A stretch of 64,000 bases of DNA from Epiperipatus broadwayi (taxonomy: Eukaryota; Animalia; Onychophora). Shown piece after piece: positions 23,801 through 58,042 of this stretch. Every line of letters starts with the position of its first letter. Position 1 is the stretch's first letter. The notes beneath the pieces were generated by a model, which ran no database searches, was not told the origin of the DNA, and saw only the letters and a program-made list of their open reading frames with translations. The translations under genes and the position numbers were made by a program. The DNA lies in the NCBI GenBank assembly GCA_028023455.1, contig JAQFVV010000009.1, positions 3,906,001 through 3,970,000 of the forward strand, given 5' to 3'.

Positions 23801-24049
23801 ATTATGCCTTAACAAGCTTATTCTATATACTTAAGGTATTTGGTTTTATTTGTATGTAAAGTTTGTTAATAAATATTTTTATTTATTTTTATGATTTATT
23901 TTTATTTATGTCTTTTTTATATATTATAAATATTTACTTAATTCTAAGAAATAATACTCCTTTATGTTGTTTTTCTTATAATCAATGAAATATAATATAA
24001 ATCTTTATTATATAATAATAACAACTTTTAAATACATCACAGAAAAATT

Positions 24050-24108
24050 ATATATATAAAAGCCTTTTTCGGTAATTCTAAATTTTTTTACCCTTCTCAA
24101 TATGATAC
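24050..24108 (-). ncRNA. Candidate variant minimal hammerhead ribozyme (U3-A8 core) in the PLE 3' end
   Basis: Exact reverse complement of 28727-28785. Confidence 0.6.
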
Positions 24109-24201
24109 CTCGTACTAATACTAACACGTATATTACGTATATAGCGACATCTACTGACATTTCCTATAATTCATTATTTTTATCATTTTATTTATCTCCC
24201 C

Positions 24202-25854
24202 TTATATTACCTTCCATTCTTTATCCATTACCCAATCATTCATTAAATCAATTGACTTTTTGTAAATGTTCATACATGTATTTATATTATATTTTATATA
24301 GTTTGTTTCATATATTTTCCTTCTATTCATTTCCTTTATATAATTTAATGGTCTTATGTTTTTAATACAATCTATTTTATGTCCAAATTTTAAATAATGA
24401 ACATATAATGCTGATCTATCATCCCTCCTTTCAATAGCACTATTATGTTCTTTTGCCCTTTGTTCTAATTGTTTTGATGTTTGTCCATAGTAAACCATTT
24501 TACATATCCCACAAGTAATTTTATATACTGTTCCCTTTATATATTTCATATCATCTTTAATCTTATAATTTCCTATTAATATATCTAAATTTTTACTATT
24601 AGACCATCCTATTTTTATATTTTTATTCATATAATTTTTATTTTTAGTTAATATATCATAAATTTTAGGTGTATATGCAATTTTAATCCATTTTATATTG
24701 TTTAATATTTTATTCCCTCTAATATTATTTTTATTATCATATAATATATTCCTAATACTTCTAGGATTATATCCATAGCTAGAATATAATTTAATAAATT
24801 GTTCTTTTTGTACTTCAGCGGTTTTTTTATCTGTGTTATACCTATCATTTTTAATTTTAAAATTCTTAATTACTGCCATCTTTTGTGTCCATGCTTGTTG
24901 TGAATCCTTATAAATTATTTTTCTTATTTTATCTTCTTTAATAAAATGATTTAATACAATCATGTTATTGTTTATCTTTATTTCTATATCTAAATATTTT
25001 ATTTTATTATCTATTTCTTTTATTGTAAACTTTATATTATTTTTATTATTATTAAATTCATTATATATATTTTTTATAACTCTTTTATTCCCTATTACTA
25101 AGATATCATCTACATATCGAAAATACTCTTTTATTTCTTTATTTATTATTCTATTCTTGACAATATGTAATTCCATTTCATTTATAAATATTGAAGCCAT
25201 TAATCCACTTATTGCACATCCCATAACCCATCCCTTATTTATATTCCAATATTCATCTTTATATTTAAAATATAAGCTATTATTTATTAAATTTAACCCC
25301 TGTTCCATAATGTCAATTATTTCCATATCCTGTATATACATTTTTAATTTTTGTATAACTATTTTAATACTTTCATCCCTAGGTATACTTGGATACATTT
25401 TCTCTATATCCATTACAAAAATACTTTGATTTCTATTCATTTTTATTATATTTAACCTATCTATAATTTCATCAGTATTTTTAATACAAAATTCCCCATA
25501 CCCCATAATATTTGCTATCCATTTATTTATATATCTACAAAATTTCTGTAAAATGAAATTTGAAAAGTTAAATAATAATCTTAATGGATTATCCTCTTTT
25601 TGTGTTTTTACTTTAGTAAATATATATGGATTTTCATACATTGATGGATACAAAAATCCATACTTATTTTTATCAATAATTCCTTTCCCTTCCATTTTAT
25701 GTAATATCTCTATATATTTACTTTTTATATTATTAGTAGGATCTTTAAATAATTTTATATATCCTTCCTTTTTTATCTCATTTTCTATCTTATCTATATA
25801 ATCTTTAGAATACATTATAACAAATCTACTACCTTTATCTTCTTTACATAACAC
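24202..25854 (-). CDS. PLE polyprotein: RT + GIY-YIG endonuclease (5'-truncated, 550 aa)
   Basis: RT motifs DIEKMYPSIP, GWVMGCAISG, YFRYVDDIL, IKYLDIEI. GIY-YIG: GTVYKITCGICKMVYYGQT..LEQRAKEH..SALYVH..FGH. A 1-bp deletion near 25937 separates the upstream coding part. Confidence 0.95.
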   Translation of the reverse strand: MLCKEDKGSRFVIMYSKDYIDKIENEIKKEGYIKLFKDPTNNIKSKYIEILHKMEGKGIIDKNKYGFLYPSMYENPYIFTKVKTQKEDNPLRLLFNFSNFILQKFCRYINKWIANIMGYGEFCIKNTDEIIDRLNIIKMNRNQSIFVMDIEKMYPSIPRDESIKIVIQKLKMYIQDMEIIDIMEQGLNLINNSLYFKYKDEYWNINKGWVMGCAISGLMASIFINEMELHIVKNRIINKEIKEYFRYVDDILVIGNKRVIKNIYNEFNNNKNNIKFTIKEIDNKIKYLDIEIKINNNMIVLNHFIKEDKIRKIIYKDSQQAWTQKMAVIKNFKIKNDRYNTDKKTAEVQKEQFIKLYSSYGYNPRSIRNILYDNKNNIRGNKILNNIKWIKIAYTPKIYDILTKNKNYMNKNIKIGWSNSKNLDILIGNYKIKDDMKYIKGTVYKITCGICKMVYYGQTSKQLEQRAKEHNSAIERRDDRSALYVHYLKFGHKIDCIKNIRPLNYIKEMNRRKIYETNYIKYNINTCMNIYKKSIDLMNDWVMDKEWKVI

Positions 25855-26218
25855 TATATTCTCTTTTCTACATATATTTCTTATTTCTTTAGTAGTTCTT
25901 TTATATTTATATTCCCTTTGTGAACATTTAATATTTCTAATTGTTTGTTCAATAAATAGTTCATTTTCCTTTTATCTACTGTAGAAATATTTGCTAATTC
26001 TATGTCCGGAGTTATCTTCTTTTTAATGTCTTTATCCACAAATGGTATAAAATAAGGAGACTTACTTAATAGTTGATTTTGCTCCGTTGAGAATTTATAT
26101 TTTGTTAGATTTATAAAATTATCTTTTATTCTGTTATTGTAATTAATATATAAAAATAGGATGGTCTAATAGTAAAAATTTAGATATATTAATAGGAAAT
26201 TATAAGATTAAAGATGAT

Positions 26219-26566
26219 ATGAAATATATAAAGGGAACATTATATAAAATTACTTGTGGGATATGTAAAATGGTTTACTATGGACAAACATCAAAACAAT
26301 TAGAACAAAGGGCAAAAGAACATAATAGTGCTATTAAAAGAAGGAATGATAGATCAGCATTATATGTTCATTATTTAAAATTTGGACATGAAATAGATTG
26401 TATTAAAAACATAAGACCATTAAATTATATAAAGGAAATGAATAGAAGGAAAATATATGAAACAAACTATATAAAATATAATATAAATACATGTATGAAC
26501 ATTTACACAAAGTCAATTGATTTAATGAATGATTGGGTAATGGATAAAGAATGGAAAGTAATATAA
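26219..26566 (+). CDS. GIY-YIG domain within the central partial pLTR
   Basis: 115-aa ORF differing from the 28286 ORF at five residues. Confidence 0.85.
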   Translation: MKYIKGTLYKITCGICKMVYYGQTSKQLEQRAKEHNSAIKRRNDRSALYVHYLKFGHEIDCIKNIRPLNYIKEMNRRKIYETNYIKYNINTCMNIYTKSIDLMNDWVMDKEWKVI

Positions 26567-26673
26567 GGGGAGATAAATAAAATGATAAAAAATAATGAAT
26601 TATAGAAAATGTCAGTAGATGTCGCTATGTACGTAATATACGTGTTAGTATTAGTATGAGGTAACATAAAGAA

Positions 26674-28236
26674 GTGACAGAATGTAAAGGATATATTAAT
26701 TACAATAACAGAATAAAAGATAATTTTATAAATCTAACAAAATATAAATTCTCAACGGAGCAAAATCAACTATTAAGTAAGTCTCCTTATTTTATACCAT
26801 TTGTGGATAAAGACATTAAAAAGAAGATAACTACGGACATAGAATTAGCAAATATTTCTACAGTAGATAAAAGGAAAATGAACTATTTATTGAACAAACA
26901 ATTAGGAAATATTAAATGTTCACAAAGGGAATATAAATATAAAAGAACTACTAAAGAAATAAGAAATATATGTAGAAAAGAGAATATAGTGTTATGTAAA
27001 GAAGATAAAGGTAGTAGATTTGTTATAATGTATTCTAAAGATTATATAGATAAGATAGAAAATGAGATAAAAAAGGAAGGATATATAAAATTATTTAAAG
27101 ATCCTACTAATAATATAAAAAGTAAATATATAGAGATATTACATAAAATGGAAGGGAAAGGAATTATTGATAAAAATAAGTATGGATTTTTGTATCCATC
27201 AATGTATGAAAATCCATATATATTTACTAAAGTAAAAACACAAAAAGAGGATAATCCATTAAGATTATTATTTAACTTTTCAAATTTCATTTTACAGAAA
27301 TTTTGTAGATATATAAATAAATGGATAGCAAATATTATGGGGTATGGGGAATTTTGTATTAAAAATACTGATGAAATTATAGATAGGTTAAATATAATAA
27401 AAATGAATAGAAATCAAAGTATTTTTGTAATGGATATAGAGAAAATGTATCCAAGTATACCTAGGGATGAAAGTATTAAAATAGTTATACAAAAATTAAA
27501 AATGTATATACAGGATATGGAAATAATTGACATTATGGAACAGGGGTTAAATTTAATAAATAATAGCTTATATTTTAAATATAAAGATGAATATTGGAAT
27601 ATAAATAAGGGATGGGTTATGGGATGTGCAATAAGTGGATTAATGGCTTCAATATTTATAAATGAAATGGAATTACATATTGTCAAGAATAGAATAATAA
27701 ATAAAGAAATAAAAGAGTATTTTCGATATGTAGATGATATCTTAGTAATAGGGAATAAAAGAGTTATAAAAAATATATATAATGAATTTAATAATAATAA
27801 AAATAATATAAAGTTTACAATAAAAGAAATAGATAATAAAATAAAATATTTAGATATAGAAATAAAGATAAACAATAACATGATTGTATTAAATCATTTT
27901 ATTAAAGAAGATAAAATAAGAAAAATAATTTATAAGGATTCACAACAAGCATGGACACAAAAGATGGCAGTAATTAAGAATTTTAAAATTAAAAATGATA
28001 GGTATAACACAGATAAAAAAACCGCTGAAGTACAAAAAGAACAATTTATTAAATTATATTCTAGCTATGGATATAATCCTAGAAATATTAGGAATATATT
28101 ATATGATAATAAAAATAATATTAGAGGGAATAAAATATTAAATAATATAAAATGGATTAAAATTGCATATACACCTAAAATTTATGATATATTAACTAAA
28201 AATAAAAATTATATGAATAAAAATAGGATGGTCTAA
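26674..28236 (+). CDS. PLE RT (520 aa, no AUG at the start), cut off from the endonuclease by a frameshift
   Basis: PLE N-terminal motif NLTKYKFSTEQNQLLSKSPYFIP and full RT motifs. One 8-bp ataaaaat unit is missing near 28224 relative to the minus copy. Confidence 0.95.
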   Translation: MTECKGYINYNNRIKDNFINLTKYKFSTEQNQLLSKSPYFIPFVDKDIKKKITTDIELANISTVDKRKMNYLLNKQLGNIKCSQREYKYKRTTKEIRNICRKENIVLCKEDKGSRFVIMYSKDYIDKIENEIKKEGYIKLFKDPTNNIKSKYIEILHKMEGKGIIDKNKYGFLYPSMYENPYIFTKVKTQKEDNPLRLLFNFSNFILQKFCRYINKWIANIMGYGEFCIKNTDEIIDRLNIIKMNRNQSIFVMDIEKMYPSIPRDESIKIVIQKLKMYIQDMEIIDIMEQGLNLINNSLYFKYKDEYWNINKGWVMGCAISGLMASIFINEMELHIVKNRIINKEIKEYFRYVDDILVIGNKRVIKNIYNEFNNNKNNIKFTIKEIDNKIKYLDIEIKINNNMIVLNHFIKEDKIRKIIYKDSQQAWTQKMAVIKNFKIKNDRYNTDKKTAEVQKEQFIKLYSSYGYNPRNIRNILYDNKNNIRGNKILNNIKWIKIAYTPKIYDILTKNKNYMNKNRMV

Positions 28237-28285
28237 TAGTAAAAATTTAGATATATTAATAGGAAATTATAAGATTAAAGATGAT

Positions 28286-28633
28286 ATGAAATATATAAAG
28301 GGAACAGTATATAAAATTACTTGTGGGATATGTAAAATGGTTTACTATGGACAAACATCAAAACAATTAGAACAAAGGGCAAAAGAACATAATAGTGCTA
28401 TTGAAAGGAGGGATGATAGATCAGCATTATATGTTCATTATTTAAAATTTGGACATAAAATAGATTGTATTAAAAACATAAGACCATTAAATTATATAAA
28501 GGAAATGAATAGAAGGAAAATATATGAAACAAACTATATAAAATATAATATAAATACATGTATGAACATTTACAAAAAGTCAATTGATTTAATGAATGAT
28601 TGGGTAATGGATAAAGAATGGAAAGTAATATAA
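28286..28633 (+). CDS. GIY-YIG endonuclease domain of the direct PLE arm (out of frame with RT)
   Basis: Translation identical to the C-terminus of the minus-strand ORF. Confidence 0.9.
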   Translation: MKYIKGTVYKITCGICKMVYYGQTSKQLEQRAKEHNSAIERRDDRSALYVHYLKFGHKIDCIKNIRPLNYIKEMNRRKIYETNYIKYNINTCMNIYKKSIDLMNDWVMDKEWKVI

Positions 28634-28726
28634 GGGGAGATAAATAAAATGATAAAAATAATGAATTATAGGAAATGTCAGTAGATGTCGCTATATACGT
28701 AATATACGTGTTAGTATTAGTACGAG

Positions 28727-28785
28727 GTATCATATTGAGAAGGGTAAAAAAATTTAGAATTACCGAAAAAGGCTTTTATATATAT
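28727..28785 (+). ncRNA. Candidate variant minimal hammerhead ribozyme (U3-A8 core) in the PLE 3' end
   Basis: gtat(c)ata TTGAGAA g GGTAA-12nt-TTACC GAA AAAGGCTTTT A tatatat. Stem II is 5 bp. Stem III is self-complementary with G-U pairs. UUA site, predicted cleavage after A28778. Confidence 0.6.
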
Positions 28786-29709
28786 AATTTTTCTGTGATG
28801 TATTTAAAAGTTGTTATTATTATATAATAAAGATTTATATTATATTTCATTGATTATAAATATTGTAATTTAAAATTGGTGTTTGTTAAACAAATAATCA
28901 AATAGCTTTATTGTTCAGAAGTTCACAAGTTCAAGCCAGAAGACAAACTATAAACTATCTGAGAATATCCAGAATCTTACATTTTACCATAGCATCAAAT
29001 CATAGAGCATTGATGCTTATTAATAATGGCAATTGCAACAATTTTCTCTCACTTATAAATATTTTTCTTTTTATTATAAATATTATCTTTTTAAATAAAA
29101 ACATGTTTAAAAAAAGTTTTTTTATTTATTATTCTTAGATTCTATGTAGTTTTTTTTCCTCTTGAAATTGTAAATCAATATTTATTTGATTCTATATTTT
29201 TCATCTTTTTTACAATTTATAAATTTTATATTAAAATAACATTTATTATCTTGTTAATAGTTCTATCTGTTTTTAAACTTTTGTAGTATTTGTCTATGTC
29301 ATAGAATTTATTAATAATATCAATTTATAAGTAGAATGTATCACAATATATAGTAAAACTCTTTTTTTAATTAGGTAATTTTAGTTCTTAGCTCAGTGCA
29401 TGTCGAATGACACTATTATTGTAGCTTAATAGTTCTTATCTTGAATGCTTGAATTAAACTTTCTCTCTCTCTCTCTTGCTATCTCTCATTTAGAATAAAA
29501 CCAGTAATATAAATATATACTTGAAAACTAATAGATAAAAACATTTAAAAAGATGGTAATTATGATAGAAGGCACTTAGAAAGTAAAATATTTGTGAGTT
29601 GATTATATATATATACATTGATCCATGATCCTGATTATATATTAGTATTTCTTTATTATATTATATTTGTTGTGTATTATTGAATTACATATGTGATATA
29701 TGAATTTGA

Positions 29710-30285
29710 ACAGTCAAAACTCTCCATACAGTATTGCCAATCAGCGCAAAGACAGAGTAATCAATGGATGCCAGAAGGCTTATATATAAAATCCCCATCT
29801 AGTACCTACTCATCCAATATTCCCCGACTAGTTTCTGGCTTGTGATCTTCATCAGTGACAAGCCTTGGATCTGGGAACACTGCACCTAGATCTTAGGATC
29901 TAATGCAACTCTCCAGCAGCCACTTTTATCTCTACTTAACTACAAAACTATGAGTCTTAAATTGAAAACACAATATTTTCAATCCAAGCTCATTGGTTTA
30001 TATAGTCATAGTACCTCTATACATTTTGATGTTTTTGGTTCTTTAATAACAATAGCCACCACCATCCTATTAGGCAGGGTTGGTTTTAAGCCAATAAACA
30101 TCACATGATCACCATTTCTTATGCTTGCTTATAACTGTTATTAAAACAGGCAAAACACCTATTGCCACTCATTGCAAGCCTTCTGGCATCCATTGATTAC
30201 TCTGGCTTGCACCAAATGGCAATATAGTATAGAGAGTTTTGCCTGTTTTTATAACAGTTATAAGCAAGCATAAGAAATGGTGATC
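29710..30285. mobile_element. Family A copy 3: composite of a tandem minus-strand array (period ~436 nt) and a sense 3' piece
   Basis: The motif acag(g/t)caaaac recurs at 29710 and 30146. Hairpin arms at ~30099-30156 and ~30236-30292. 19-bp direct repeat atgtgatatatgaatttga at 29691-29709 and 30286-30304, partly overlapping the element end. Confidence 0.8.
29812..29870 (-). ncRNA. Decayed family A hammerhead
   Basis: Reverse complement reads atccaa ggc ttgtca CTGATGA a gat cacaa gcc a GAAA ctaGTC gggga atattggat. Core intact; stems I and II damaged. Confidence 0.6.
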
Positions 30286-56911: not shown

Positions 56912-58042
56912 GATGAACTGATGTGATATGCACTGTGACTTCTCCTTATATGGAGTCAGGAATCTCTCAGCAACTATGCCCATAGAAACCTGTTAGCCAC
57001 TTTGAACTCCTTTCCATTCCCTACCCCCATTTTTTCATATTCTTTTCTACCCTGCTCCATCCCATTTCCATAACATAAACTTTGTCAATTCCATGGCCTT
57101 TATATCTAAAACCCCTTTAACTTTTCCCAAACCCAGCATAAAAATAAATAAGCCACTTTCAATATAATCACTTTGTTCATATTCATTCTTCCACAATTTC
57201 ATTATTTGTATCCTTTCTGCTTTCAGACATTTACATTGAATTAACAGATGCCTAATATTTTCTATACCTTCTTTACAGAGATTACAGCCTAAATAACCCA
57301 TATTTCTCCATTTACACGTATATTTCCTTGTTGTTAAAGATCCTGTTTGAGCCTTAAATAATAAACTACTTTCCTTGCTATTATCATAAATTAACTTACA
57401 CCCAATGTTCCGTTTACTTCTATATATATTTAAACTCTTTTTACTCTCCATACTAGTTCTCCATCTCTCCAACTCTCTATTCTTTATTAATGCATCTATT
57501 CTTTTATGCCATTCCTTACCATTATAACACTCAACAATCCTTCTAACACAATCATTCTACCTTTTTTAAAGTATACTGATATAATTTTTTTATCGAAATC
57601 TTTTGCATACCGCATTTCTCACCCATCTTGTTGCCTGGCAATCGTAACCCAATTACATACTATTTTGGCTATTCTTTTATTATCCATAAACTGCAACCTA
57701 CCAAACATTTTTATTTTGCTTTTTGCATCTCTCATATAAAAACTTGACCATTCTATTTGTTTTTAAATTGCCTCCTTTGCTGTGTCACACTTCTGCATCT
57801 AATGCATGGCTTCCCACTTCTTTTTGTACTTTTTCTAAGTAATCTAATATCCCTTTACTAACACATAATACATCATTACCATATATTAACCCTGCTACTA
57901 TCATTCCCTTTCATACAATTCTAGCTACATCATATTTATTATAGAAAAACATTGTTAATTTCTTTATCAATCCCTTTTTTTTTCTTTGCTTCATTTAACA
58001 ATTTTTTCTCCCATTCATCAAAGCAATTTTTCTGATTTCTTA
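56912..58042 (-). mobile_element. Second copy of the same LINE 3' portion, opposite orientation
   Basis: ORF 57047-57472: KKSLNIYR..IYDNSKESSLLFKAQTGSL..CNLCKEGIENIRHLLIQC (C-x2-C-x8-H-x4-C); same tail. Confidence 0.85.

Follow-up and report, generated by a model that had tools for sequence, protein, structure and literature searches.

A probable PLE hammerhead with a U3-A8 core pair in Epiperipatus broadwayi

The window analyzed here, a stretch of 64,000 nucleotides from Epiperipatus broadwayi, contains a Penelope-like element (PLE) whose 3′ end carries a motif that we regard, with a probability of about 0.78, as a PLE hammerhead by descent and architecture. It is very probably a minimal, dimer-type hammerhead of type I, in which the core pair C3-G8 has turned into U3-A8. 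This reading is supported by the position and the architecture of the motif, the intact other core positions, a low chance expectation, the high-copy tail in which the motif lies, and the published occurrence of U3-A8 in other hammerheads. Among the core positions, only 3 and 8 differ; these two are mutual pairing partners, and they differ in a complementary manner.

Anatomy of the motif

All parts of the motif named in a preliminary description of this DNA were found in the sequence at 28727–28785 (+) (Table 1), and the mirror copy described at 24050–24108 (−) is an exact match over 24057–24100 (0 mismatches). U4, G5, A6, N7, and A9 of the first box and G12, A13, and A14 of the second box are all present. 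C3 and G8 as such are absent; a U is found at 28735 and an A at 28740, and the resulting U3-A8 keeps the Watson–Crick pair. A28768 (15.1) pairs with U28777 (16.1), residue 17 is A28778 and not G, and the predicted cut lies between 28778 and 28779. On the sense strand, 101 nt separate the stop of the GIY-YIG ORF from the start of the motif.

Helix I (CAUA/UAUA) consists of three A-U pairs, a bulged C, and then four A-U or G·U pairs inside a UA repeat. It is weak, and the UA repeat is easily matched by any AT-rich sequence. Helix III (AAAGGCUUUU) gives a self-duplex of 10 bp with two G·U pairs and −7.3 kcal/mol, so that the stem III initially called self-complementary does pair with itself over 10 bp but, with its two G·U pairs, is a near-palindrome only. 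For the monomer, the hammerhead fold is unfavorable (+2.1 kcal/mol versus an MFE of −5.9 kcal/mol). The cofold favors AU-rich pairings over the helix III dimer, and helix II forms in it. An unfavorable predicted fold is usual for minimal hammerheads but does not speak for the motif.

The PLE 3′ region was said to lack a CTGANGA box, and indeed there is none in 28217–28859 or in the mirror of this region. The possibility of a canonical hammerhead at another place in this region was rejected on this ground. The sole CTGANGA of the element, at 27368, lies within the coding sequence of the RT, outside any hammerhead context. Outside the element, at 29831–29855 (−) of the window, CUGAUGA and GAAAC boxes stand 13 nt apart with no helix II hairpin between them; these boxes adjoin a 57-nt inverted repeat (30100–30156/30236–30292) and have no Rfam match.

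Table 1. Features of the PLE locus and of the hammerhead motif (window coordinates)
Feature	Position	Strand	Basis
Left arm: reverse-oriented, 5′-truncated PLE copy	23976–26151	−	Inverted-repeat pairs I1, I2, and I4; ORF list; BLASTP
Mirror hammerhead motif, left arm	24050–24108	−	Exact match
Internal pLTR fragment: EN-coding part and 3′ UTR	26115–26668	+	95% identical to 28178–28734
Right arm: PLE body to element 3′ end	26669–28859	+	ORFs, Pfam, relatives, contig depth
Helix I 5′ strand (GGUAUCAUA region), bulged C28731	28727–28734	+	Sequence; descriptor finds 3 contiguous pairs
Core U3 U4 G5 A6 G7 A8 A9 (UUGAGAA, 28735–28741) and unpaired G28742 between 9 and 10.1	28735–28742	+	
Helix II, GGUAA (28743–28747)/UUACC (28760–28764), 5 bp, G10.1-C11.1, 12-nt loop	28743–28764	+	
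G12 A13 A14 (28765–28767), helix III AAAGGCUUUU (28768–28777, A15.1...U16.1), A17 (28778)	28765–28778	+	
Helix I 3′ strand UAUAUAU, within (UA)n run	28779–28785	+	Sequence
Element 3′ tail behind the motif, 74 nt	28786–28859	+	Inverted-repeat arm end at 28859; depth drop

The element and its locus

The window is AT-rich (21–33% G+C), and a near-perfect palindrome spans positions 23976–28859, each arm of which is one retroelement copy. According to the inverted-repeat analysis, the arm pairs 23976–24618/28217–28859 and 24618–25937/26906–28225 are 100% complementary. The left arm encodes RT and EN in a single frame (ORF 24202–25854, −, 550 aa), and this ORF aligns in BLASTP with the PLE proteins P0007 and P0013 (E values of 7e-30 and 1e-21) from the RT through GIY-YIG to the C terminus. 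The right arm contains an RT ORF with the YVDD reverse-transcriptase motif (26674–28236, +) and, in another frame, a GIY-YIG ORF (28286–28633, +), the Pfam match of which (E value of 2e-4) is slightly below the curated cut-off. Relatives of the element contain RVT_1 and GIY-YIG domains. The terminal repeats expected of a PLE are found in the internal pLTR (26115–26668 versus 28178–28734) and in the head-to-head arms.

The element is a non-intact PLE, at variance with the preliminary description, which took it for intact-looking. The + arm lacks a start codon and begins at a residue equivalent to approximately residue 170 of the relatives. In addition, an 8-bp deletion at 28216/28217 of this arm puts RT out of frame with EN. 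The − arm is cut further than the + arm and has a 1-nt indel. An intact element was therefore rejected, given the ∼170 missing N-terminal residues and the 8-bp frameshift in one arm. The deleted 8 bp correspond to one unit of the tandem ATAAAAAT, whose longer form is present in other copies. The two arms are otherwise identical, differing by this ATAAAAAT unit (28216/28217 versus 24618–24626) and by a 1-nt indel near 25937/26906, and because of these differences they are not a pure assembly mirror.

The similarity of the internal pLTR ends at 26668 (corresponding to 28734), at ...CATA, immediately before the hammerhead motif. Contigs of two runs depart from the window sequence at 26666, and the 16 loose letters of a run X1 contig at this position keep the ORF open upstream (frame read by eye). 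The internal repeat 26115–26668 represents part of a pLTR, to which a 5′-truncated body is joined, and the junction between pLTR and body is a rearrangement private to this copy.

As a whole, the window copy is a dead, 5′-truncated, head-to-head double insertion. This arrangement is the reason for the motif standing at both outer ends. The mirror copies noted previously are present, but their location is no property of a ribozyme and follows from the two head-to-head arms of one insertion. No sense-tandem copy of the motif was found at this locus. Because the two motif copies occupy opposite strands and none is present in the internal repeat, a dimer would require a second transcript. Elsewhere in the window, at 57047–57472 (−), an ORF of 141 aa, Cys/His-rich at one end, is similar to the C-terminal portion of ORF2 of a non-LTR retrotransposon.

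Family copies, relatives, and chance expectation

In a DNA run of the same organism, the summed contig word depth amounts to 60,000–128,000 from 28386 to 28855, with ∼3,600 in the bin after 28762–28855 and ∼65 beyond 28950. At 28859, contigs of runs X5 and X7 exit and continue as the reverse complement of the left flank. From this exit and from a depth like that of the element, it follows that the motif-bearing tail belongs to a 3′ end present in very high copy number. Since the internal pLTR ends directly ahead of the motif, the 125-bp tail might have been flanking DNA copied in a palindromic duplication; such an origin as transduced flank was rejected, because its depth equals that of the element and the contigs of the other runs exit at 28859. 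The depth increases toward the 3′ end, as expected of 5′-truncated retroelement copies.

The common variants that are listed for the family within the motif are located in loop II (28753, 28755, and a 2-nt deletion at 28746) and in the UA run; in other copies, the 3′ strand of helix I varies in length by a TATA insertion behind 28776. Beyond this listing are 109 further variant places. Two contig alignments (run X1, record 8, and run X7, record 23) end at 28777, a single base ahead of the predicted cut, and a third contig (run X7, record 24) continues through this position. The stops at 28777 are probably caused by the length variation of the UA run (the TATA insertion) and not by cleavage. 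To the right of the PLE, 57 DNA-run contigs join at 28892 from unrelated A/T-rich sequence, with a depth of ∼1,500 at 29044–29137, and another repeat seems to start there, near 28892.

Within the window, a sensitive blastn search with the element for further family copies gave only AT-rich noise. No protein on record is identical to the EN, the search for EN homologues returned no matches, and the exact-motif scan of metagenome contigs gave 0 matches.

Ten relative loci were fetched for comparison. The RT relatives are all distant (≤29% identity), and hammerhead-type motifs of the same build are present at seven of the ten loci (L001, L002, L003, L004, L005, L006, and L009). Canonical minimal hammerheads are found in four of the ten (L002, L004, L005 from Musca domestica, and L006), and three exhibit one core change each: U4C in L003 (98–132), A9C in L009 (147–178), and U15.1-A16.1 in L001 (5358–5399). 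These single changes should impair cleavage. All seven motif-bearing relatives possess one nucleotide after position 9, a helix II that opens with G-C, and a self-complementary helix III, and their motifs are positioned 125–181 nt after an ORF stop or 69–170 nt before an ORF start. The window motif has all of the features common to the seven.

Two of the metagenome loci, L004 (1717–1970) and L001 (2747–2794/5352–5399), exhibit a head-to-head layout with inverted motifs facing away from each other. Together with the pair in the window, they fit the reported cleavage and extension of both DNA strands by a PLE protein (PMC11167929).

The conserved 3′ segment might instead be mainly a recognition or initiation site of the RT, in which the hammerhead-like boxes are incidental. 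In the Anolis PLE, a stem-loop close to the 3′ end is the internal start site of reverse transcription, and behind it comes a “tail” (PMC11167929); in the window, 74 nt of tail are likewise found behind the motif. This explanation is improbable, as it leaves unexplained the exact core, the GAAA box, and the palindromic helix III, which are common to distant relatives with unrelated flanks. Descent from a PLE hammerhead remains the preferred reading of the segment.

The Rfam hammerhead families gave no match at the gathering score or at E ≤ 10, in line with the earlier expectation that standard searches would miss the motif. Because Rfam, as a control, also misses the fully canonical minimal hammerhead of L002 (E ≤ 1), its silence is uninformative. 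A first covariance model, derived from three relatives (R1), recovers the motifs of four further loci with E values from 4.6e-5 to 0.019; this model, based on relatives only, did not list the window motif. With a second model (R2), made from twelve matches in seven relative loci, the candidate obtains 8.6 bits (E value of 8.5, rank 22–23 of 26 in the window), which corresponds to AT-rich background. Three features cost score here: the U-A pair and the great length of both loop II and helix III.

A strict descriptor, as stringent as the candidate itself, matched nothing in the window except the two copies and had 0 matches in 300 simulated 64-kb windows (second-order Markov simulations, n = 300). 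We also used a looser, literature-style descriptor (helix II ≥4, helix III ≥2, helix I ≥3, and any Watson–Crick 3-8 pair), which gives 0.25 matches per 64-kb window, counting both strands and all four Watson–Crick core pairs. For the sense-strand zone of 200 nt behind the PLE ORF, the chance of a match to this looser descriptor is ∼4e-4. The argument from position is sounder than that from the strict descriptor, which was fitted after the candidate had been seen and is thus post hoc.

Would a chance resemblance in AT-rich DNA, unrelated to hammerheads, account for these results? It would agree with the covariance models, which score the candidate at background only, with the 0.13 U-A-core matches that the loose descriptor gives per simulated window, and with two further partial U-A-core matches in the window. 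Nevertheless, chance is a very improbable explanation, since the motif is found on the right strand, ∼100 nt behind the PLE ORF, at a location that matches the relatives (joint chance, ∼4e-4), possesses every published accessory feature, and lies within a conserved high-copy 3′ end. These observations argue for the PLE hammerhead.

Predicted activity and comparison with known hammerheads

By analogy with the PLE hammerheads that have been studied, helix II and the short helix I would form in the element RNA, and two motifs would pair via the near-palindromic helix III (AAAGGCUUUU) to give a 10-bp intermolecular helix. In such a dimer, U3-A8 would replace C3-G8 and position the 2′-OH of residue 8 as the general acid, with G12 as the general base, and the chain would be cut after A28778, yielding a 2′,3′-cyclic phosphate and a 5′-OH. 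A likely role would be to process element RNA that is multimeric or results from read-through, perhaps with the aid of the protein of the element.

We put the prediction that the motif is still cutting at roughly even odds. Activity is favored by the fact that only two pairing core positions are changed, and in a complementary manner; it is disfavored because each of the two changes, C3>U and G8>A, is a transition toward A/T in a genome of 22% G+C and because amplification may not need the cut. Possibly, the motif is a hammerhead by descent that is no longer a ribozyme and is carried along by a family amplifying without need of cleavage, although we consider this less likely. Cleavage of the Anolis PLE is protein-assisted, and its insertion in vitro is unaffected by hammerhead catalytic mutants (PMC11167929), and the in vitro cleavage of metazoan PLE minimal hammerheads is low (PMC4209133). 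The weak thermodynamic support for the fold and the likely impairing core changes in the relatives L003 (U4C), L009 (A9C), and L001 (U15.1-A16.1) point in the same direction as these reports.

A motif decaying in this way would not be expected to have changed at exactly the pairing positions with the Watson–Crick pair kept and ∼11 other conserved positions intact, as two random changes would strike the 3-8 pair in approximately 1 of 78 cases. G10.1-C11.1 and the helix III palindrome are also intact, and the common family variants listed spare the core. The high copy number of the family does not prove cleavage activity, because metazoan PLE hammerheads cleave poorly and insertion in vitro proceeds without the cut.

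Covariation from C3-G8 to U3-A8 is known from several natural hammerheads, and activity in vitro had already been shown for designed ribozymes in which the nucleotides at 3 and 8 covary (Perreault et al. 2011, PMC3088659). Minimal hammerheads have been described in PLE terminal repeats (Cervera & De la Peña 2014, PMC4209133), and U3-A8 occurs among those of the Schistosoma Cercyon PLEs, for which a U3-A8 descriptor gave ∼1,300 matches (PMC4209133). The same study describes an unpaired nucleotide between 9 and 10.1, conservation of G10.1-C11.1, and a helix III that is palindromic, along with the dimer model (PMC4209133). The suggestion that the motif represents a novel natural compensatory variant does not hold, since U3-A8 is already published (PMC3088659; PMC4209133), PLE hammerheads included. 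The U3-A8 variant, the PLE context, and the dimer model are all in the literature, so that no new question is raised, and the window motif is a further example.

If the motif cleaves, it would be a further minimal hammerhead of natural origin with U-A as the core pair, from a new host lineage, and pattern and Rfam searches would be undercounting hammerheads in AT-rich genomes. The motif is of use for annotation and for the choice of constructs for tests of core-pair tolerance. More tentatively, whole PLE lineages in a strongly AT-rich genome may have swapped C3-G8 for U3-A8 and still be catalytically competent, which we think is possible but rather doubtful. Such a lineage-wide swap would be a large-scale natural experiment on the 3-8 pairs tolerated by a minimal dimeric hammerhead, with mutation pressure as the driver and selection compensating.

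The window motif exhibits the same compensatory swap of the core Watson–Crick pair as the U3-A8 hammerheads collected previously. The hammerheads gathered by Perreault et al. in 2011 are said to be extended ones with loop-loop contacts that are not PLE-borne. Przybilski and Hammann reportedly found in 2007 that 3-8 exchange mutants are active, with a tolerance that, going by the title, depends on the surrounding elements. For this reason, the activity of those hammerheads is not transferable to the minimal motif. For minimal PLE hammerheads, cleavage as dimers was reportedly demonstrated by Lunse, Weinberg, and Breaker in 2017.

The Poseidon element of Anolis carolinensis resembles the window element in that both are PLEs with the hammerhead between the 3′ part of one unit and the ORF of the next. 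In the Anolis PLE, single mutants of position 3 or 8 abolish cleavage, and the C3G/G8C double mutant partly restores it (PMC11167929). The 3-8 pair is thus exchangeable there, but the swap tested is G-C and not U-A. Furthermore, the ORF of Poseidon starts inside the motif, whereas the ORF start of the next unit is missing from the window copy.

The closest correspondence is to the metazoan minimal type, including Cercyon of Schistosoma mansoni. The motifs have in common the type I topology, the location in a terminal repeat behind the RT-EN ORF, the unpaired nucleotide between A9 and G10.1, the G10.1-C11.1 pair, a short predicted helix I without loop contacts, and a palindromic helix III that implies a dimer; with Cercyon, U3-A8 is shared as well. 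The four accessory features that are not imposed by the descriptor of Cervera and De la Peña can all be recognized in the window motif: the nucleotide after position 9, G10.1-C11.1, the palindrome of helix III, and a putative short helix I, which in the minimal type has about 4–5 bp. Helix III of the window is longer, being a 10-nt near-palindrome that could alternatively fold into a hairpin of 3 bp and a 4-nt loop. Helix II comprises 5 bp with a 12-nt A/U-rich loop, whereas that of the published families has 6–8 bp. The host differs too, and the PLE lineage shows ≤29% protein identity to anything found.

With the canonical relatives L002, L004, L005, and L006, the window motif shares the element order, the position of the bulge, G10.1-C11.1, the self-complementary helix III, and the class of distance to the ORF. 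Those motifs possess C3-G8, loops II of 4–8 nt, and helices III of 4–6 nt, whereas loop II of the window (12 nt) is twice the length found in the relatives. The bulged nucleotide is a U in most relatives, and in the window motif it is a G, as in L009.
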